DNA of 64,000 bases, from sequence record NC_020851.1. One strand, given 5' to 3'. Position numbers and translations under genes: made by a program. Below the pieces are notes generated by a model. That model saw nothing but the letters and a program-made list of their open reading frames with translations. It did no database searches and had not been told where the DNA came from. Shown here one piece after another: positions 18,356 to 54,077 of the stretch (positions are counted from its first letter, which is position 1; every line of letters begins with the position of its first letter).

Positions 18356-18363
18356 TATTTATA
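18356..18363 (-). promoter_or_regulatory. T4-type late promoter TATAAATA
   Basis: Exact match upstream of the structural operon that starts at 18317. Confidence 0.75.
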
Positions 18364-21948: not shown

Positions 21949-21973
21949 TTGCTATCTCCTTTCGAACAAAGAT

Positions 21974-22018
21974 ATTATACAATAAAAAAGCACCCCGTGC
22001 AAGGAGTGCTGTGACGGT
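21974..22018 (-). promoter_or_regulatory. Stem-loop sigma70 early promoter cassette (terminator plus promoter), copy 1
   Basis: TTGCAC-17-TATAAT, with the -35 box in the loop of a hairpin followed by T6. Confidence 0.75.
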
Positions 22019-22029
22019 TTAGGGAGTGG

Positions 22030-22293
22030 TCAGTCATTCATTTTCCCGTTAAGAATTTCGTAATAATCTGGGGAAGGACGTTTACCATTCTTCCATACAG
22101 ATTGTGTTGAATCTCTTCCAGTTAGATTATAAGGGTCAACACCTTCGGGGATTGGTTTATCCCAGTCATCTATCTCACTGATAGATTTGACAAGATCAAT
22201 AATAGTTGCATTCTTATCTTTGTTATTTACAAACACATCGTCCCACCAATCTGCAATTACATCGTAAAGTTTTTGTTCGTATTCAGTCATCAT
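22030..22293 (-). CDS. Hypothetical protein
   Basis: 87-aa ORF coupled to the upstream gene. Confidence 0.65.
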   Translation of the reverse strand: MMTEYEQKLYDVIADWWDDVFVNNKDKNATIIDLVKSISEIDDWDKPIPEGVDPYNLTGRDSTQSVWKNGKRPSPDYYEILNGKMND

Positions 22294-22757
22294 ACTACTC
22301 CATTAGCACTATCTTCAACTGTACCCATTGGACCTTTGTGACTATTCATCAGAATCTCAACCTCAGCATCACGAATCTTCCATTCCTCATACTTCTTATC
22401 AAGGTCTTCATTCATCGTTAGATCATACTCTTCACAGATCTTACGCTGCTCTTCTTCACTTATCCAGTCATTGAAGACTAATGACATAGCACCAGTATAA
22501 ATGCTCTTGGGAGACATGCCCACACAGAGCATGAACTTCTCAAATAATTTGAAGTATTGATTGGCATTGAGATCACCAGCAGGAGCAGTGATCAGGTAAT
22601 GCTCTTCAGGAATGAAGTCATCAATGACCCCTACAGTAGACCCACTACCATAGGTGGGCGTGTAGGTAGCATCAAATTTTAACTGGACGGTTGCTTCGTA
22701 GGTCATGGTGTCTGATGTGTATGAATGTAGTATACAATAAAAAAGCACCCCAGTCAA
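22290..22757 (-). CDS. Hypothetical protein
   Basis: Probable start at MTYEATVQ, downstream of the promoter at 22729-22775. Confidence 0.65.
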   Translation of the reverse strand: MTGVLFYCILHSYTSDTMTYEATVQLKFDATYTPTYGSGSTVGVIDDFIPEEHYLITAPAGDLNANQYFKLFEKFMLCVGMSPKSIYTGAMSLVFNDWISEEEQRKICEEYDLTMNEDLDKKYEEWKIRDAEVEILMNSHKGPMGTVEDSANGVV

Positions 22758-22775
22758 TGAGGTGCTGTGACGGTT
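22729..22775 (-). promoter_or_regulatory. Stem-loop sigma70 early promoter cassette, copy 2
   Basis: TTGACT-17-TATACT; shares accgtcacagcac...ggggtgcttttttattgtata with copy 1. Confidence 0.75.
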
Positions 22776-22786
22776 GTGGAAGTGGT

Positions 22787-23326
22787 TTAGAGTGCTTCCA
22801 AATTTTCTACCAGTATTTTGAGTTCTTGTAGGGTGGCATCATTTTTGAGTGTGTTGGCTCTGTTACTGATGACCCACACATTACCTTTGATGTATCCTTT
22901 CTCTGGAATAATTTTATCCAGTGAAGGATTGTTTGGGGAGTTTCTAACCTCCGTGCTTTCAATTTTTATACCAAGCAACGGACATCTCTCTGGAATAATA
23001 ATATCAGAAAGTTCAATATTAAAGGCAAGATTATTTTTCTTTGCCCTATTTTTTGCTCTTGCTAACATTTTATATTCTGTTGTCTTTGAGATTGCGTTGG
23101 GGTCAAATCTTTTCTTATTTGTCTCAACAGATCTTTCTCTACGAAGACATCCACAGGATTGAGTTTTGCCAGAAACTATTTCGTGTCTTCTGGTTGTAGA
23201 AGTGCTCCCACCACAAGAGCAAGAGCATTCACATAGAACATACTTTTTACAAGGAGATTGATACTCTCGTAAGATAGTCAATCTCCCATAAGTATTACCA
23301 ACTAAACTTTTCCTTTTATAAGACAT
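22787..23326 (-). CDS. Free-standing HNH-type homing endonuclease downstream of psbD
   Basis: N-terminal GRLTIL...CECSCSCGG...SGKTQSCGC; C-terminal CPLLG...PSLDKIIPEKGYIKGNVWVISNRANTLKN. Confidence 0.8.
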   Translation of the reverse strand: MSYKRKSLVGNTYGRLTILREYQSPCKKYVLCECSCSCGGSTSTTRRHEIVSGKTQSCGCLRRERSVETNKKRFDPNAISKTTEYKMLARAKNRAKKNNLAFNIELSDIIIPERCPLLGIKIESTEVRNSPNNPSLDKIIPEKGYIKGNVWVISNRANTLKNDATLQELKILVENLEAL

Positions 23327-23330
23327 ACTA

Positions 23331-23381
23331 TACCTTCGTTAGTTACTATTATTTATACAAATAAATACTTCAACGAAGGTA
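23331..23381 (-). promoter_or_regulatory. RBS-sequestering hairpin with a late promoter in its loop
   Basis: 10-bp arms taccttcgtt/aacgaaggta at 23331-23340 and 23372-23381; TATAAATA at 23350-23357. Confidence 0.75.
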
Positions 23382-23386
23382 ATAAA

Positions 23387-24442
23387 TCAAAGAGCATTAC
23401 CTCTTGGAAGGATTTCCTCAATTACAGGAAAGTTTTCGTGTGGTTGGTCAATAGTCATCATCCATTCACGGAGGCCATTGTTCAACAAAATATTTTTCGT
23501 GTAGAAGGTCTCATACGAACCATCTTCAGCAGCACGAATCTCTTGACTCACAAAATCATAAGCACGAAGATTAAGAGCAAGCCCAATGATGCCAATAGAA
23601 GAGACCCAAAGACCCATGACAGGAACAAACAACATAAAGAAGTGCAACCAACGCTTATTGCTAAACGCAACCCCGAAGATTTGTGACCAAAAACGATTTG
23701 CTGTAACCATCGAATAGGTCTCCTCCTCCTGAGTGGAATCGAACGCTTTAAAAGTGTTTGCCTGTTCTCCATCTTCATACAGTGTATTCTCGACAGTAAC
23801 TCCATGAATAGCAGAGAGAAGTGCTCCTCCCAGTATACCAGCAACTCCCATCATATGGAAGGGGTTGAGCGTCCAGTTATGAAAGCCCTGGAGGAAGAGA
23901 AGGAACCTGAAAATCGCCGCAACACCGAAACTCGGCGCAAAGAACCAAGATGACTGTCCCAAAGGATAGATGAGGAATACAGACACGAATACAGCAATAG
24001 GACCAGAAAAAGCAATCGCATTGTAGGGACGGATTCCAATTAGACGTGCCAGTTCAAACTGACGTAACATAAAACCTATAAGTGCAAAGGCACCGTGGAG
24101 AGCAACAAAGGACCAAAGCCCTCCAAGTTGGAGCCACCGTTGAAAGTCCCCTTGAGACTCAGGACCCCAAAGTAGAAGAAGAGAATGACCCATAGCGTCA
24201 GCAGGCGTCGAGACAGCTGCCGTAAGAAAGTTAGCACCCTCAAGATAGGAACTAGCAAGTCCATGGGTGTACCAACTCGTAACAAAAGCTGTGCCAGTAA
24301 GCCAACCGCCAATGGCAAGATAAGCAGTGGGAAGAAGTAGGAGTCCAGACCAACCCACAAAGACAAAGCGATCCCGTTTAACCCAGTCGTCCAAGATGTC
24401 AAACCATCCCCTCCCTGATTGTTGTAATGTTGAAGTAGTCAT
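23387..24442 (-). CDS. psbD: Photosystem II D2 protein
   Basis: [27 protein letters not shown], ends PRGNAL; C-terminal lumenal segment unusually divergent. Confidence 0.98.
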
Positions 24443-24497: not shown

Positions 24498-24592
24498 TGA
24501 GAAGTTATACCTACTTTATGTTTCCGGTAGAGTTGAGGCCAAGTGTCCCGAATAATCTCTGCCAACTTATCGGGTGTGGATGAACTAATCAC
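24494..24592 (-). CDS. Small hypothetical protein (32 aa)
   Basis: GTG start overlapping the talC stop; MISSSTPDKLAEIIRDTWPQLYRKHKVGITSH. Confidence 0.5.
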   Translation of the reverse strand: MISSSTPDKLAEIIRDTWPQLYRKHKVGITSH

Positions 24593-25254
24593 AGACCCTT
24601 GACAGAGTTCCAATCTTTCTGGAACTTCTCAAGACCTTGATCTGTTAGAACATGATTATACATTCCCCAAAATACATGAGGTGGAATTGTACAGATTTCT
24701 GCACCGGCATCAAAACATCTTCCTACTTGATGAACATCACGAACTGATGCGGCAATAATCTTAGTAGTACTAAAGTGTTGATTATAGAGACTAGCAATAG
24801 TCTGAACGAGTGCTACTCCAGAAAGAGAGTTATCGTTCATTCTCCCTACAAAAGGAGAAATATATGCGGCACCAGCACGACGTGCAAGAATTGCCTGTGC
24901 TGCAGAAAATATAAGAGTTACATTAACCTTTCTTCCCACAGAAGCAAGTGCTGTACATGCCTTCAATCCTTCTACAGTACAAGGAACTTTGATTGTGACA
25001 TTCCATAGTCCTTCAAATTCCATTGCCTGGTCAATCATTTCTTCGGCAGTATCGGCAACAACTTCTGCCGATACAGATTCGAATTGATTACTCATAGAAG
25101 AAATCTCTTTGATAACTTCTACAGGATCCATACCACTTGCTTTAATCAGAGTAGGATTGGTTGTAATACCCTCAATCATTCCTGTTGTGTTTGCTTCACT
25201 GATTGCATCAACATCAGCAGTGTCTAAAAATAGTTTCATTAGTTTGCAATTCAA
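24589..25254 (-). CDS. talC: Transaldolase (TalC family)
   Basis: LFLDTA, GITTNPTLI, SAEV (catalytic Glu), TIKVP (Schiff-base Lys), NVTLIFS, YISPFVGR. Likely start at MKLFLDT. Confidence 0.95.
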   Translation of the reverse strand: MNCKLMKLFLDTADVDAISEANTTGMIEGITTNPTLIKASGMDPVEVIKEISSMSNQFESVSAEVVADTAEEMIDQAMEFEGLWNVTIKVPCTVEGLKACTALASVGRKVNVTLIFSAAQAILARRAGAAYISPFVGRMNDNSLSGVALVQTIASLYNQHFSTTKIIAASVRDVHQVGRCFDAGAEICTIPPHVFWGMYNHVLTDQGLEKFQKDWNSVKGL

Positions 25255-25708: not shown

Positions 25709-26218
25709 TTATTTGAATTTTTCTTTTTTCAATATTCTATATCCAGAAGCAGATTTATTATAATTTTTTAATGTGCTTTGAGTCCTCCATAAATTCCCAG
25801 TTATTACTCCATTTTCTCTACACCACTTTCTCAAATTAATACATTCATAAATCGTTCCACTATTAATATTCTCTATTGTCCAAATCCATCTGCAAATAGA
25901 ATGCTCACTATTTTTTTGATTATTTGTCCATTCTAGATTGCAAACTCTATTATCATCTTTTATTTCATTAATATGATTTACTTGAGGAAAATTATTTGGA
26001 TTTGGAATAAAAGTTTCTGCAACCAATCTATGAATTCTTTTATTATAATGTTTGTTATTTTTCATTAATCCCACAAATAAATAACCCTTTTGATGGTAAC
26101 GCAATTTCAATTCACGGAAAGTTATATTCCTATTATCACCCGGTCCCGTGATTTTATCACTAAAAACTTTACCATCCTCAGTAATATAATATCCTGGAAA
26201 ATCTTTTAGTTCTTTCAT
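25709..26218 (-). CDS. NUMOD4-HNH homing endonuclease
   Basis: YYITEDGKV..., KGYLFVGL, IHRLVAETFIPNPNNFPQVNHINEIKDDNRVCNLEW. Confidence 0.88.
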   Translation of the reverse strand: MKELKDFPGYYITEDGKVFSDKITGPGDNRNITFRELKLRYHQKGYLFVGLMKNNKHYNKRIHRLVAETFIPNPNNFPQVNHINEIKDDNRVCNLEWTNNQKNSEHSICRWIWTIENINSGTIYECINLRKWCRENGVITGNLWRTQSTLKNYNKSASGYRILKKEKFK

Positions 26219-26222
26219 GATC

Positions 26223-26588
26223 TTAGTGTTCTTGTAGATATTCTATCATACTTTGGAGAGTTTGGGTGTTGTCTCCTACCAGCCCCAGTGCAGTGTTGCA
26301 GTTGTTGCAGAGCACACCCCGTATCTTATTTGTTGAGTGGCAGTGGTCAATACATTTCTTGGTTAGTTCTGCATCACATATTTGGCAGTTTGTATTAGAC
26401 ATCAAGTTATTATATTGGTCTTCTGTGAGCCTAAACTTTCTTCGTGCAACCTCATGGGGTTTATAGTATTGTCTACGAACTTCTCTTTCACAGTCCTTAC
26501 ACTTTGATTGGACACCAGAAGGTCTGCTGCTCCTTTTAGAAAAACAAGAAAGTTCTTTTGTTTCTCCACATCTGCTACAAGTTTTCAT
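26223..26588 (-). CDS. Endonuclease VII-family free-standing homing endonuclease (F-CphI-like position and family)
   Basis: CSRCG...CKDC, CQICD...CIDHCHSTNKIRGVLCNNCNTALG; immediately downstream of psbA; late promoter at 26615-26622. Confidence 0.85.
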   Translation of the reverse strand: MKTCSRCGETKELSCFSKRSSRPSGVQSKCKDCEREVRRQYYKPHEVARRKFRLTEDQYNNLMSNTNCQICDAELTKKCIDHCHSTNKIRGVLCNNCNTALGLVGDNTQTLQSMIEYLQEH

Positions 26589-26684: not shown

Positions 26685-27764
26685 TCAACCGATGGAAGGA
26701 GCAGTAAGTGCTACAGGAGTTGACTCAGCAGCAGCAAGATCCAATGGAAAATTATGGGCGTTCCTTTCGTGAATCACCTCTAATCCAAGACCAGCACGGT
26801 TGAGAACGTCTGCCCAAGTGTTGAGCACACGACCCTGTGAATCAATCACAGACTGATTGAAGTTGAAACCGTTGAGATTGAAAGCCATCGTGGATACACC
26901 AAGTGCGGTGAACCAGATGCCAACAACGGGCCATGCAGCAAGGAAGAAGTGCAAGGAACGTGAGTTGTTGAATGAAGCATATTGGAAGATCAAACGACCG
27001 AAGTAGCCATGTGCTGCGACGATGTTGTAGGTCTCTTCTTCTTGACCGAACTTATAACCATAGTTCTGTGACTCAGTTTCAGTCGTCTCACGGACGAGTG
27101 AAGATGTAACCAGACTTCCGTGCATAGCAGAGAAAAGAGATCCACCGAATACCCCAGCAACACCGAGCATGTGGAACGGGTGCATAAGGATATTGTGTTC
27201 TGCCTGGAATACAAGCATGTAGTTAAAAGTACCAGAGATACCAAGAGGCATAGCATCGGAGAAAGAACCTTGACCGAAAGGATAGACGAGGAATACTGCA
27301 CTCGCAGCAGCGACTGGAGCAGAATATGCTACACAGATCCATGGACGCATACCTAAACGATATGAGAGTTCCCACTCACGTCCCATATAAGCATAGATGC
27401 CGATAAGGAAGTGGAAGACTACCAGTTGGAAAGGACCACCGTTATACAACCACTCATCGAGTGATGCTGCTTCCCAGATTGGGTAGAAGTGGAGACCGAT
27501 TGCATTTGAACTTGGGACAACTGCACCAGAAATGATGTTGTTGCCATACATAAGTGAACCAGCAACGGGTTCACGAATACCGTCAATATCGACGGGTGGT
27601 GCTGCGATGAATGCGACAATGAAGCAGACAGTTGCTGCTAACAGTGTTGGGATCATCAGTACACCGAACCAACCAACATACAAACGGTTGTTAGTTGATG
27701 TCACCCACTCACAGAAATTCTGCCATGGGGATGTAGATTGTTGCCTTGAAAGAGTTGTAGCCAT
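26685..27764 (-). CDS. psbA: Photosystem II D1 protein (no intron)
   Basis: Uninterrupted 359-aa D1 with [37 protein letters not shown]. Confidence 0.99.
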
Positions 27765-27771
27765 TGAATTG

Positions 27772-27885
27772 TACGAAAAAGTAAGACCATCAGGGAATGG
27801 TGGAGTTACTATTTCCCAGACACCCTAAGTCTGGGATATGAAAGACGTGTTTAGACACCCTATAGGTCTTGGTTTGAGGGGTGTT
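27772..27885 (-). ncRNA. PhotoRC-II-like structured psbA leader RNA
   Basis: Hairpins cccagac/gtctggg and accat/atggt, and an aaacacgtctttcatatcc core, directly upstream of psbA. Family call is from recall and position; boundaries approximate. Confidence 0.7.
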
Positions 27886-27932
27886 ACAAACAGTTAAGAA
27901 ATGTGTTGATTCCTTAACTTGCTGATGTATTT

Positions 27933-48582: not shown

Positions 48583-48662
48583 TAAGGTCTTGCCATGCAC
48601 GCCACTTGCTCTTTAACCAGAAGCAAGAAACTGGACGGTAGTAACTTCCACCCGCACCAACG
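48583..48662 (-). ncRNA. wcaG-like RNA motif
   Basis: ttggtgcgg...gtggcgtgcatggcaagacctta directly upstream of gmd/fcl; matches my recollection of the cyanophage wcaG motif and its usual context. Confidence 0.7.
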
Positions 48663-48715
48663 GCATTTGAGAGATGCCGTAAACTCATAAGAGGGTCATA
48701 ATGACTCCACCAGGT

Positions 48716-52995: not shown

Positions 52996-53066
52996 AGCGG
53001 AATACCAGAATCGAACTGGTGACGAAAGGTTGGAAACCTTTAGTTTTGCCTCTAAACTAATTCCGC
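52996..53066 (-). tRNA. tRNA-Gly(TCC)
   Basis: Cloverleaf; anticodon loop TTTCCAA. Confidence 0.92.
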
Positions 53067-53112
53067 AGAGTGGGAGATTGCTCCCCCATCACACTTCCTT
53101 CACACAAGAAGT

Positions 53113-53141
53113 ATTATAAGACAAGATTTGATTCTTGTCAA
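53113..53141 (-). promoter_or_regulatory. sigma70 promoter upstream of tRNA-Gly
   Basis: TTGACA-17-TATAAT with an internal inverted repeat gacaaga/tcttgtc. Confidence 0.75.
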
Positions 53142-53142
53142 G

Positions 53143-53215
53143 TGGGTTTAGTCAGGCTCGAACTGACGACTTGCAGGTTAAAAGCCCGATACTCTACCAA
53201 CTGAGTTATAAACCC
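53143..53215 (-). tRNA. tRNA-Lys(TTT)
   Basis: Cloverleaf; loop CTTTTAA. Confidence 0.9.
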
Positions 53216-53238
53216 AAATCTACTTATTAAAAGTAGAA

Positions 53239-53310
53239 AGCCTTCGACAAGATTTGAACTTGCGACCTGAGCTTTACAAAAGCCCTGCTCTACCACTGAG
53301 CTACAAAGGC
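53239..53310 (-). tRNA. tRNA-Thr(TGT)
   Basis: Cloverleaf; loop TTTGTAA. Confidence 0.92.
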
Positions 53311-53314
53311 AAGA

Positions 53315-53401
53315 CGGAGGATGTTGGATTCGAACCAACGGAAGATTTACACCTTCGACAATTTAGCAAACTGTTGCTTTCGACCACTCAGCCAATCCTC
53401 C
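53315..53401 (-). tRNA. tRNA-Ser(GCT)
   Basis: Long variable arm; loop TTGCTAA. Confidence 0.92.
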
Positions 53402-53406
53402 GTGAA

Positions 53407-53480
53407 TGCCCGAATCCGGACTCGAACCAGAGACCTCACCGTTATCAGCGGTGTGCTCTAACCATCTGAGCTATTCGGGC
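53407..53480 (-). tRNA. tRNA-Ile(GAT)
   Basis: Cloverleaf; loop CTGATAA. Confidence 0.93.
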
Positions 53481-53484
53481 AAAG

Positions 53485-53569
53485 CGGAGAGGGTGAGATT
53501 CGAACTCACGGAGGCTTTCACCTCGCTGGTTTTCAAGACCAGAGCCATAAACCACTCGACCACCTCTCC
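53485..53569 (-). tRNA. tRNA-Ser(TGA)
   Basis: Long variable arm; loop CTTGAAA. Confidence 0.93.
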
Positions 53570-53575
53570 AGGTTT

Positions 53576-53702
53576 AAGAGAAGGGCAGATTCGAACTGCC
53601 ATTTGCCAAAGGACTAACTTAAACGTTTCGTCTCGGACGGGAGGTAATCCGTCTCTGCCACCTTGAATTCTAGGCGACCACCATCCTAATAGGTGCTTCT
53701 CT
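53576..53702 (-). ncRNA. 127-nt tRNA-like RNA with no canonical anticodon arm
   Basis: Perfect acceptor stem AGAGAAG/CTTCTCT and T-arm GGCAG-TTCGAAT-CTGCC enclosing several extra hairpins. Confidence 0.7.
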
Positions 53703-53711
53703 TATGCGACA

Positions 53712-53740
53712 ATCATACCAGAAGTGGTGATGATTGCCAA
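53712..53740 (-). promoter_or_regulatory. Promoter cassette of the tRNA-like RNA; near-duplicate at 53899-53926
   Basis: TTGGCA-17-TATGAT and TTGACA-16-TATGAT, sharing caatcat...ttctggtatgattgtc. Confidence 0.65.
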
Positions 53741-53813
53741 TGGAGAATAACGGACTCGAACCGTTGACATCCTACTTGCAAAGCAGGCGCTCTACCAACT
53801 GAGCTAATTCCCC
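53741..53813 (-). tRNA. tRNA-Ala(TGC)
   Basis: G3:U70 pair; loop TTTGCAA. Confidence 0.93.
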
Positions 53814-53815
53814 AA

Positions 53816-53887
53816 TCGGGGTGGCAGGGATCGAACCTGCGACCCTCGCTTCCCAAAAACGATGCGCTACCTCTGCGCTACACCCCG
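53816..53887 (-). tRNA. tRNA-Pro(TGG)
   Basis: Cloverleaf; loop TTTGGGA. Confidence 0.92.
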
Positions 53888-53926
53888 AAGATGAGACAAT
53901 CATACCAGAAAGGTAATGATTGTCAA

Positions 53927-53998
53927 CTCCCCCGGCAAGATTCGAACTTGCGACAAAGTGATTAACAGTCACCGACTCTACCGCTGAGCTACAGGGGA
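53927..53998 (-). tRNA. tRNA-Asn(GTT)
   Basis: Cloverleaf; loop CTGTTAA. Confidence 0.93.
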
Positions 53999-54003
53999 TC
54001 AGG

Positions 54004-54077
54004 CAGGCAAGGAGGGACTCGAACCCCCGACCAACGCATTAGAAGTGCGTGGCTCTGTCCATCTGAGCTACTTGCCC
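54004..54077 (-). tRNA. tRNA-Arg(TCT)
   Basis: Cloverleaf; loop CTTCTAA. Confidence 0.92.

Follow-up and report, generated by a model that had tools for sequence, protein, structure and literature searches.

The stretch of DNA analysed here, referred to as the window, comprises 64,000 nucleotides (nt) of record NC_020851.1 and was identified as Synechococcus phage S-SKS1 (NC_020851 / HQ633071; genus Llyrvirus, host WH7803) by 100% identity at the same coordinates. It contains an intact psbD gene on the minus strand, followed by a free-standing gene for an endonuclease-like protein. The psbD product matched the Pfam Photo_RC model (PF00124, E = 1.9e-71) and aligned over residues 1-351 with the D2 chains of solved photosystem II (PSII) structures (E = 3e-206), whereas D1 chains reached only E = 6e-52. 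Alignment to solved structures therefore identifies the protein as D2, not D1. The RefSeq record NC_020851 and many other cyanophage RefSeq records name psbD 'photosystem II D1'; the GenBank originals give D2. Exactly 60 nt separate the psbD stop codon from the start of the next gene (22787-23326, minus), which is the spacing that an earlier, sequence-only reading of this DNA had given for an HNH endonuclease gene.

The same reading had described the C-terminus of D2 as heavily rewritten, and comparison with solved D2 chains confirmed this description. The span 23411-23521 (minus) corresponds to residues 308-344 of the 351 in the S-SKS1 protein, or 309-345 in the 352-residue numbering used below for individual residues, and contains 13 replacements: P309G, E310S, F311Y, E323N, I325L, A327E, A330M, P331T, Q332I, V340P, F341V, P342I and V345I. 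The canonical 309-345 tail of cyanobacteria and plastids is not what S-SKS1 D2 carries. Residues E312 and K317 were identical in S-SKS1 and the solved chains, and the last seven residues were the same as in those chains and in all relatives. When 73 endonuclease-less cyanophage relatives were used as the reference, S-SKS1 lacked the commonest residue at 13 of the 45 positions in the tail, compared with 7 of the 285 in the body (Fisher p = 4e-8). Its residue was found in none of the 73 relatives at 10 of the 13 replaced tail positions; all seven body differences were ordinary polymorphisms among these relatives.

The S-SKS1 tail is a recombination tract rather than a set of scattered point mutations. 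Four of the loci compared (given here by L numbers: L003, L005, L006 and L011) were approximately 90% identical to S-SKS1 in the body of the gene, but only 62-65% identical in the last 138 nt. Three others (L002, L004 and L007) were 85-94% identical to S-SKS1 in the last 138 nt, with bodies at 81-89%. Codon-by-codon comparison placed the 5' breakpoint differently in each of these carriers, at approximately codon 313 in L002, 322 in L007 and 327 in L004. The shift in identity over 138 nt and the differing breakpoints bear out the earlier interpretation of the tail as a conversion tract.

The relationship of the patch to its flanks was seen in L196. Its psbD gene was 100% identical to that of S-SKS1 over codons 262-291 and 99% identical over codons 248-306, but its tail was canonical, with only 58-69% identity, and the endonuclease downstream of this canonical tail was 87-92% identical to that of S-SKS1. 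There were 13 differences in 231 nt (codons 230-306) compared with 48 in 135 nt (codons 307-351; p = 3e-13). Because the flanks of L196 are close to those of S-SKS1 while the tail between them differs, the patch swaps independently of both flanks. Even among canonical alleles, silent sites had diverged further at the 3' end of psbD than in the body, a pattern that fits a recombination-prone gene end, with the limit that Nei-Gojobori estimates over 45 codons were saturated and noisy. A displaced remnant of the canonical tail was looked for downstream of the endonuclease in S-SKS1, and none was found. Locus L130 (IMGVR_UViG_3300010389_000190) contained a second, partial psbD 3' end behind the endonuclease and an open reading frame (ORF) of 118 amino acids (aa); this duplicate looks like the trace that is expected from insertion of a cassette that brings its own gene end.

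Features of the psbD locus of S-SKS1 and of the genes upstream of it (positions in the window)
Feature	Position	Strand	Basis
psbD, D2 protein, 351 aa, intact	23387-24442	minus	Pfam Photo_RC and D2 chain alignment
Recombinant variant patch, codons 307-351	23390-23524	minus	identity shift relative to relatives
Core common to all carriers, codons 327-351	23390-23464	minus	DNA comparison of carriers
Spacer, 60 nt, psbD stop to endonuclease ATG	23327-23386	minus	stem-loop and TATAAATA motif
Free-standing endonuclease-like gene, 179 aa	22787-23326	minus	PHROG and fold matches
Terminator and promoter-like element closing the endonuclease cassette	22727-22789	minus	hairpin and hexamers
talC	24589-25254	minus	gene order
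NUMOD4/HNH_3 gene, second in tandem behind psbA	25709-26218	minus	domain matches
Endonuclease VII gene, F-CphI homologue, 3' of psbA	26223-26588	minus	34% identity to S-PM2 F-CphI, E = 7e-22
psbA	26685-27764	minus	gene order

Carriers of the tail were located with an exact pattern for any DNA that encodes the variant core peptide. Such DNA was present in five IMG/VR viral contigs and 11 metagenome contigs, and none was detected in representative genomes of 185,579 species of bacteria and archaea. S-SKS1 was the sole carrier among 420 GenBank cultured-phage records with a psbD tail, the rest reaching at most 77% identity over 52 residues. A region-restricted search of 5.8 billion proteins returned a best tail identity of 79%, but this search overlooked tails that the DNA pattern later found and was not trusted.

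Deduplication left 132 unique psbD 3' contexts. The variant tail occurred in 15 of these, drawn from isolates and from IMG/VR, GOS, ENA, JGI and Logan assemblies, with the endonuclease downstream in ten and no endonuclease in five; a single mosaic tail was followed by the endonuclease. Canonical tails had it downstream in 41 contexts and lacked it in 73, and the two contexts that were left unassigned were both canonical. Overall, the endonuclease gene lay approximately 65-150 nt past the psbD stop in 52 unique contexts and was absent from 78, including the S-SKS1-like contigs L005, L011, L083 and L168. It was present sporadically at one fixed intergenic site, as is the case for free-standing homing endonucleases.

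The variant tail was seen in at least seven different downstream contexts. The five without a nuclease, which include L168, L083/L171, L172 and L173, had differing downstream DNA, and no nuclease remnant was detected in them by tblastn. One of them, the near-isogenic L168, is a GOS contig whose PsbD protein was 97% identical to that of S-SKS1 with an identical tail, whose talC gene and neighbouring ORF were 96-98% identical to those of S-SKS1, and in which a small membrane-protein gene overlaps the psbD stop. The sequence-only reading, which proposed that the tail confers immunity to the neighbouring endonuclease, had itself named the same tail without the endonuclease as a finding that would refute that proposal. 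Orphan psbD 3' fragments that carry the variant tail without the gene body were found in L085/L175 (IMGVR_UViG_3300031566_000395) and L169, the missing body representing one deletion or replacement. The L085 fragment is preceded by a Gly/Ser/Arg-rich ORF of 215 aa and followed by a different HNH gene of 91 aa.

The variant core came in 12 DNA haplotypes across the 15 contexts; 17 codon variants were synonymous, and no variant changed an amino acid. It follows that the variant peptide is under purifying selection, and it is presumably made and used. At codons for the same residue, the fraction of identical codons was 0.44 between variant and canonical tails and 0.455 among canonical tails; silent-site 'recoding' of the patch was rejected as a candidate feature, as it did not exceed this background. 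Only the amino-acid replacements are unusual and, since silent changes would be the cheapest escape from a DNA-recognising enzyme, this argues for selection on the protein.

The 179-aa product of the downstream gene matched PHROG families annotated as endonuclease, endonuclease VII and HNH (phrog_3322, E = 4e-34; phrog_1035, E = 4e-24; phrog_374 and phrog_3118, 'HNH endonuclease'). It had no match in Pfam, including the HNH model, or in NCBIfam. In the Protein Data Bank (PDB) the single sequence matched nothing, and a profile matched only at chance level (a cytochrome b5-domain protein, E = 1.1). Metagenomic homologues numbered 428 at E<=1e-5, all of them unnamed, and approximately 60 IMG/VR loci carried the family, at 44-96% identity to the S-SKS1 protein and nearly always directly behind psbD.

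An alignment-based AlphaFold model of this protein had a predicted local distance difference test (pLDDT) value of 86.8; the single-sequence model was unusable (pLDDT 35). The N-terminus was modelled as an AP2-like three-stranded sheet and helix with invariant cysteines, and the C-terminus as a small sheet-and-helix domain. The best Foldseek match in the PDB was the HNH enzyme PacI (3ldy; probability 0.98), with a weak E value of 0.04 and TM scores of 0.38/0.46. A viral fold library gave many strong matches, with E values down to 2e-9, some of them annotated as HNH homing endonucleases or AP2/ERF domains. All family-invariant residues were retained in the S-SKS1 protein, including Asp137, Asn149 and Asn158. 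The protein is predicted to be a nuclease with two domains, an AP2-like one for DNA binding and a PacI-like beta-beta-alpha-metal one of the HNH superfamily. The original 'HNH' label was only partly borne out, by the PHROG families and the weak PacI match, and had no counterpart in Pfam or NCBIfam.

The spacer between psbD and this gene folds into a stem-loop whose paired region includes the purine-rich stretch immediately ahead of the endonuclease ATG (-16.7 kcal/mol, z = -3.1); none of 200 shuffled sequences was equally stable. The motif TATAAATA is located inside the hairpin loop at 23350-23357, 24 nt upstream of the ATG, and its region was more conserved between cassette types than any other part of the spacer. 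The window contains nine copies of the motif (2993-63713), a total not above chance, and all nine are on the coding (minus) strand; this strand bias suggests T4-like late promoters in S-SKS1, a siphovirus. One copy precedes the psbA-linked endonuclease VII gene by 27 nt, and another, at 18356-18363, lies upstream of a tail-fibre gene. No known Rfam RNA family was detected in the psbD-endonuclease interval. The ribosome site of T4 homing-endonuclease genes is sequestered on read-through transcripts and a late promoter lies inside the hairpin (PMC2988022). By analogy, the hairpin and putative late promoter of the S-SKS1 spacer may work in the same way. Operator-like similarity of the endonuclease promoter and spacer to psbD, of the I-TevI autorepression type, did not exceed that of shuffled controls.

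Beyond the endonuclease gene lies an element at 22727-22789 that consists of a terminator-like hairpin and promoter-like hexamers (10/12 matching). This terminator-plus-promoter element, of approximately 60 nt, is repeated at 21968-22030, and the pair brackets two hypothetical genes (22030-22757). The element recurs in many related loci and in nuclease-less relatives it directly follows the psbD stop, which places the endonuclease cassette between the stop and the element. It looks, from its positions, like a portable regulatory unit that marks the borders of gene cassettes.

A tie between the tail and the endonuclease was evident in the comparison of S-SKS1 with L084. From approximately position 23480 (about codon 322) through the endonuclease, the two were mostly 85-100% identical, with approximately 95% identity in the tail core, the spacer and the first half of the endonuclease gene; the psbD bodies were approximately 78% identical. 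As read from the alignment, this block is the signature of joint transfer of tail and endonuclease. The pattern was not universal, since L196 departs from it.

Taken with the observed patch, its mosaic breakpoints and distribution, the purifying selection on its peptide and the architecture of the cassette, the probable explanation is that the S-SKS1 tail is a separable, functional D2 allele that circulates at a nuclease-associated recombination hotspot. On this explanation, a patch of approximately 75-135 base pairs circulates in marine Synechococcus phages, exchanged at the psbD 3' end through homologous recombination or gene conversion. That gene end is also where a homing-endonuclease-like cassette habitually inserts, one that has its own late-promoter-like motif and a hairpin over the ribosome-binding region. 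Because they lie side by side, patch and cassette are sometimes copied together, as happened in the lineage common to S-SKS1 and L084. The nuclease would be active and cut near the psbD 3' end, and its breaks would probably raise local recombination, driving exchange and helping to produce the mosaics. Patch and cassette are nonetheless separable, and the 12-13 replacements would be kept by selection on the protein and not be needed for carrying the nuclease.

Several points weigh against this explanation. The link from nuclease breaks to mosaics is itself inferential, and the structural assignment of the nuclease leans on the weak PDB match (E = 0.04). The psbD bodies of all carriers are ordinary, and why divergence should be limited to the tail is left unexplained. 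The over-representation of variant tails next to the endonuclease could reflect more than proximity. Finally, the context counts came from three search keys and phylogenetically non-independent samples, and are descriptive rather than frequencies.

An arms race is one alternative, judged unlikely, though the least so of the alternatives. Under this alternative the endonuclease family cuts the canonical tails of co-infecting phages, and the variant is a resistant immunity allele that spreads with the nuclease or, through protection from marker exclusion, alone. An endonuclease was adjacent to 2 of 3 variant alleles and 1 of 77 canonical alleles in the set selected by psbD (p = 0.003), and to 5 of 11 variant contigs in the metagenome set selected by tail, against 1 of 77 canonical alleles (p = 7e-5). 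Where the nuclease was at least 88% identical to that of S-SKS1, the tail was variant in six of ten contexts, mosaic in one and canonical in three. The tail and nuclease shared as a single block would also be expected under the arms race, as would the pairing of one tail with three nuclease lineages, whose identity to the S-SKS1 nuclease was only 46-50% in one tally and 46-100% in another; the same pairing was also counted against an obligate link. Spread of the tail without a nuclease is what broad resistance predicts, and the mechanism is established in T-even phages (PMC2988022).

Other observations were difficult to reconcile with an immunity allele, which should accompany the nuclease wherever the latter occurs, be missing or newly orphaned elsewhere, and show an excess of DNA-level change, silent change included, at the recognition site. 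The tail was canonical in 41 of the 52 nuclease-adjacent contexts, five variant contexts had no nuclease, and silent divergence was at background, the changes being non-synonymous and at invariant positions. Nucleases 90-92% identical to that of S-SKS1 were found in genomes whose own psbD tail is canonical (L178, L193, L196/198/199), and one with 94% identity stands beside the mosaic tail (L179-183). Canonical tails beside the nuclease were not significantly over-diverged (tail/body divergence ratio of 1.78 compared with 1.36, p = 0.11), and an operator-like copy of a psbD site was not found near the nuclease promoter. An obligate nuclease-immunity role for the variant tail is not supported by these sequences. 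What stands of the co-conversion and immunity proposal is the block that S-SKS1 and L084 share with the endonuclease, together with the enrichment; the tails without a nuclease and the close nucleases beside canonical tails count against the remainder.

Several otherwise canonical, endonuclease-adjacent loci (L089-L091, L095, L096, L098-L100, L117 and L133; codons 308-312) had rare replacements at residues 308-310, a stretch without variation among the 73 nuclease-less relatives; the excess of tail changes beside the endonuclease was not significant when body divergence was controlled. A more far-reaching form of the arms race, in which psbD-linked homing endonucleases drove an ultra-conserved lumenal surface of PSII to a new stable state and a broadly resistant, working tail sweeps through the phages, nuclease or no nuclease, by protecting them from marker exclusion during co-infection, is doubtful. 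If true, it would mean that a selfish-DNA arms race has been rewriting the water-oxidising enzyme.

Selection on the protein could also act by itself. Under this alternative, which is likewise improbable, the tail is an adaptation of the lumenal surface of D2 (docking of PsbO or assembly factors, or proton exit) and the nuclease is coincidental at a cassette hotspot. The strict purifying selection on the variant peptide, the replacements at positions where none of the 73 relatives vary, the retention of E312 and K317 and the recurrence of the tail in diverse downstream contexts, with and without the nuclease, are consistent with it. According to a published PSII study, D2-E310 sits at the outer mouth of the broad channel and is central to a surface network that involves D222, D224, H228 and K188 of PsbO; D2-E323 is on the surface, outside that network. 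This alternative leaves the enrichment beside the nuclease unexplained, mutating E310 or E323 had no spectroscopic effect in the literature consulted, and a convincing co-varying change was not found in phage D1, where there were only conservative changes at variable positions (n = 5).

The same published study qualifies two functional claims of the sequence-only reading. Both glutamates had been assigned to the acidic network of the proton-exit channel; E310 does belong to a network with PsbO, but E323 lies outside it. The further claim of altered PSII function was overstated, since mutation of D2 E307, D308, E310 and E323 leaves Fourier-transform infrared (FTIR) spectra unchanged and the variant retains E312 and K317, which are discussed for catalysis and lie near the Cl-1 site and proton path. 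The effect of the tail on water oxidation is expected to be modest. We infer that the tail changes interactions on the lumenal side of D2, for example with PsbO through residue 310; the docking of PsbO or of assembly factors in the lumen may be altered. Docking of CyanoP to the D2 tail was considered and dropped, as a published review gives the position of CyanoP as unknown.

It is very improbable that the tail reflects relaxed constraint on a dispensable, drifting phage sequence, or an assembly chimera, for although phage auxiliary genes can decay and two records hold only an orphan psbD tail fragment, the tail was recovered independently in 15 contexts, with an intact reading frame, conserved last residues and no amino-acid variation beside its 17 synonymous variants.

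The genes around psbD add a second site of endonuclease insertion. On the minus strand, psbA is followed by a tandem pair of endonuclease genes (25709-26588), a small ORF, talC and psbD, and beyond the psbD-linked endonuclease gene there are two hypothetical genes and then purine-synthesis genes. The NUMOD4/HNH_3 member of the pair (25709-26218) was seen in no other locus compared. Rfam matches above the gathering score were a PhotoRC-II RNA upstream of psbA (27801-27896, minus), a wcaG RNA (48591-48688, minus) and an array of ten tRNA genes (52996-54077, minus).

Interrupted reaction-centre genes were seen in other loci. Candidate introns in psbD of IMG/VR loci were rejected, because the long apparent matches were cross-hits to the neighbouring psbA gene. 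One insert of approximately 0.2 kilobases (kb) was present in psbD of Synechococcus phage ACG-2014d isolate Syn7803C93 (L201, KJ019062) and not in its sister isolates; the annotated psbD coding sequence is shortened and the locus had no Rfam match. Matches to psbA were in two or three pieces approximately 0.2 kb apart in L099, L106-L109, L133 and L147, which is consistent with one or two introns as in S-PM2 psbA, and these loci also contain endonuclease VII-like genes behind psbA.

A close known system is F-CphI of cyanophage S-PM2, a free-standing homing endonuclease encoded downstream of psbA (Zeng et al. 2009, as cited in PMC3037559), with which the antisense RNA CfrI has been described (PMC2984593). 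Like F-CphI, the psbD-linked endonuclease gene is directly behind a PSII reaction-centre gene and is sporadic among relatives; S-SKS1 also has an F-CphI homologue in the place of F-CphI behind psbA (26223-26588). Unlike F-CphI, an endonuclease VII linked to psbA, the psbD-linked protein has a predicted AP2-like and PacI-like architecture, lies behind psbD with no intron involved, and is unrelated in sequence (BLASTP best E = 1.3). S-PM2 has no endonuclease behind psbD. The predicted N-terminal sheet and helix, C-terminal metal-finger fold and cysteine clusters resemble those of AP2-HNH homing endonucleases and PacI, from which the protein differs in its lack of a Pfam HNH match and in its weak PDB match.

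The seg and mob endonucleases of T4 provide the precedent for intronless homing, marker exclusion and co-conversion tracts (PMC2988022). S-SKS1 shares with them an intergenic insertion next to a gene that is conserved, transfer of the nuclease gene in one block with the neighbouring coding sequence, tract ends that vary, and a hairpin over the ribosome-binding region with a late-promoter motif inside. Unlike the T4 case, cleavage and homing in S-SKS1 are putative, the variant flank is separable and mostly absent from nuclease carriers, and the changes in the flank are replacements in an ultra-conserved protein, not silent polymorphisms.

Mosaicism of cyanophage psbA and psbD was reportedly described by Zeidner et al. 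in 2005. Intragenic recombination of both genes has been documented (Sullivan et al. 2006, PMC1484495). The S-SKS1 tail resembles the documented psbD mosaicism in its patchwise exchange and in a 3' segment whose history differs from that of the 5' part. It goes beyond that mosaicism in that the patch carries 12-13 replacements, is confined to viral and metagenome sequences and is partly linked to a nuclease cassette. The literature searched contained no description of a psbD-linked nuclease family of AP2-like and PacI-like architecture, nor of a rewritten D2 tail that is limited to phages, maintained by selection and recombined both together with a nuclease and apart from it.

The psbD-linked genes define a second reaction-centre-linked family of endonuclease-like genes in cyanophages, alongside F-CphI behind psbA. 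Homing-endonuclease adjacency alone does not make a divergent flank an immunity allele. The tail patch and the nuclease cassette provide a clear field example of two elements that recombine both jointly and independently, which is relevant to the influence of selfish nucleases on auxiliary metabolic genes. The D2 tail is among the most conserved stretches of PSII, and the phage allele replaces a third of it, unchanged across many backgrounds. The variant tail shows which residues can change in a D2 protein that is still maintained by selection, and hints that phages may tune the lumenal side of PSII during infection.

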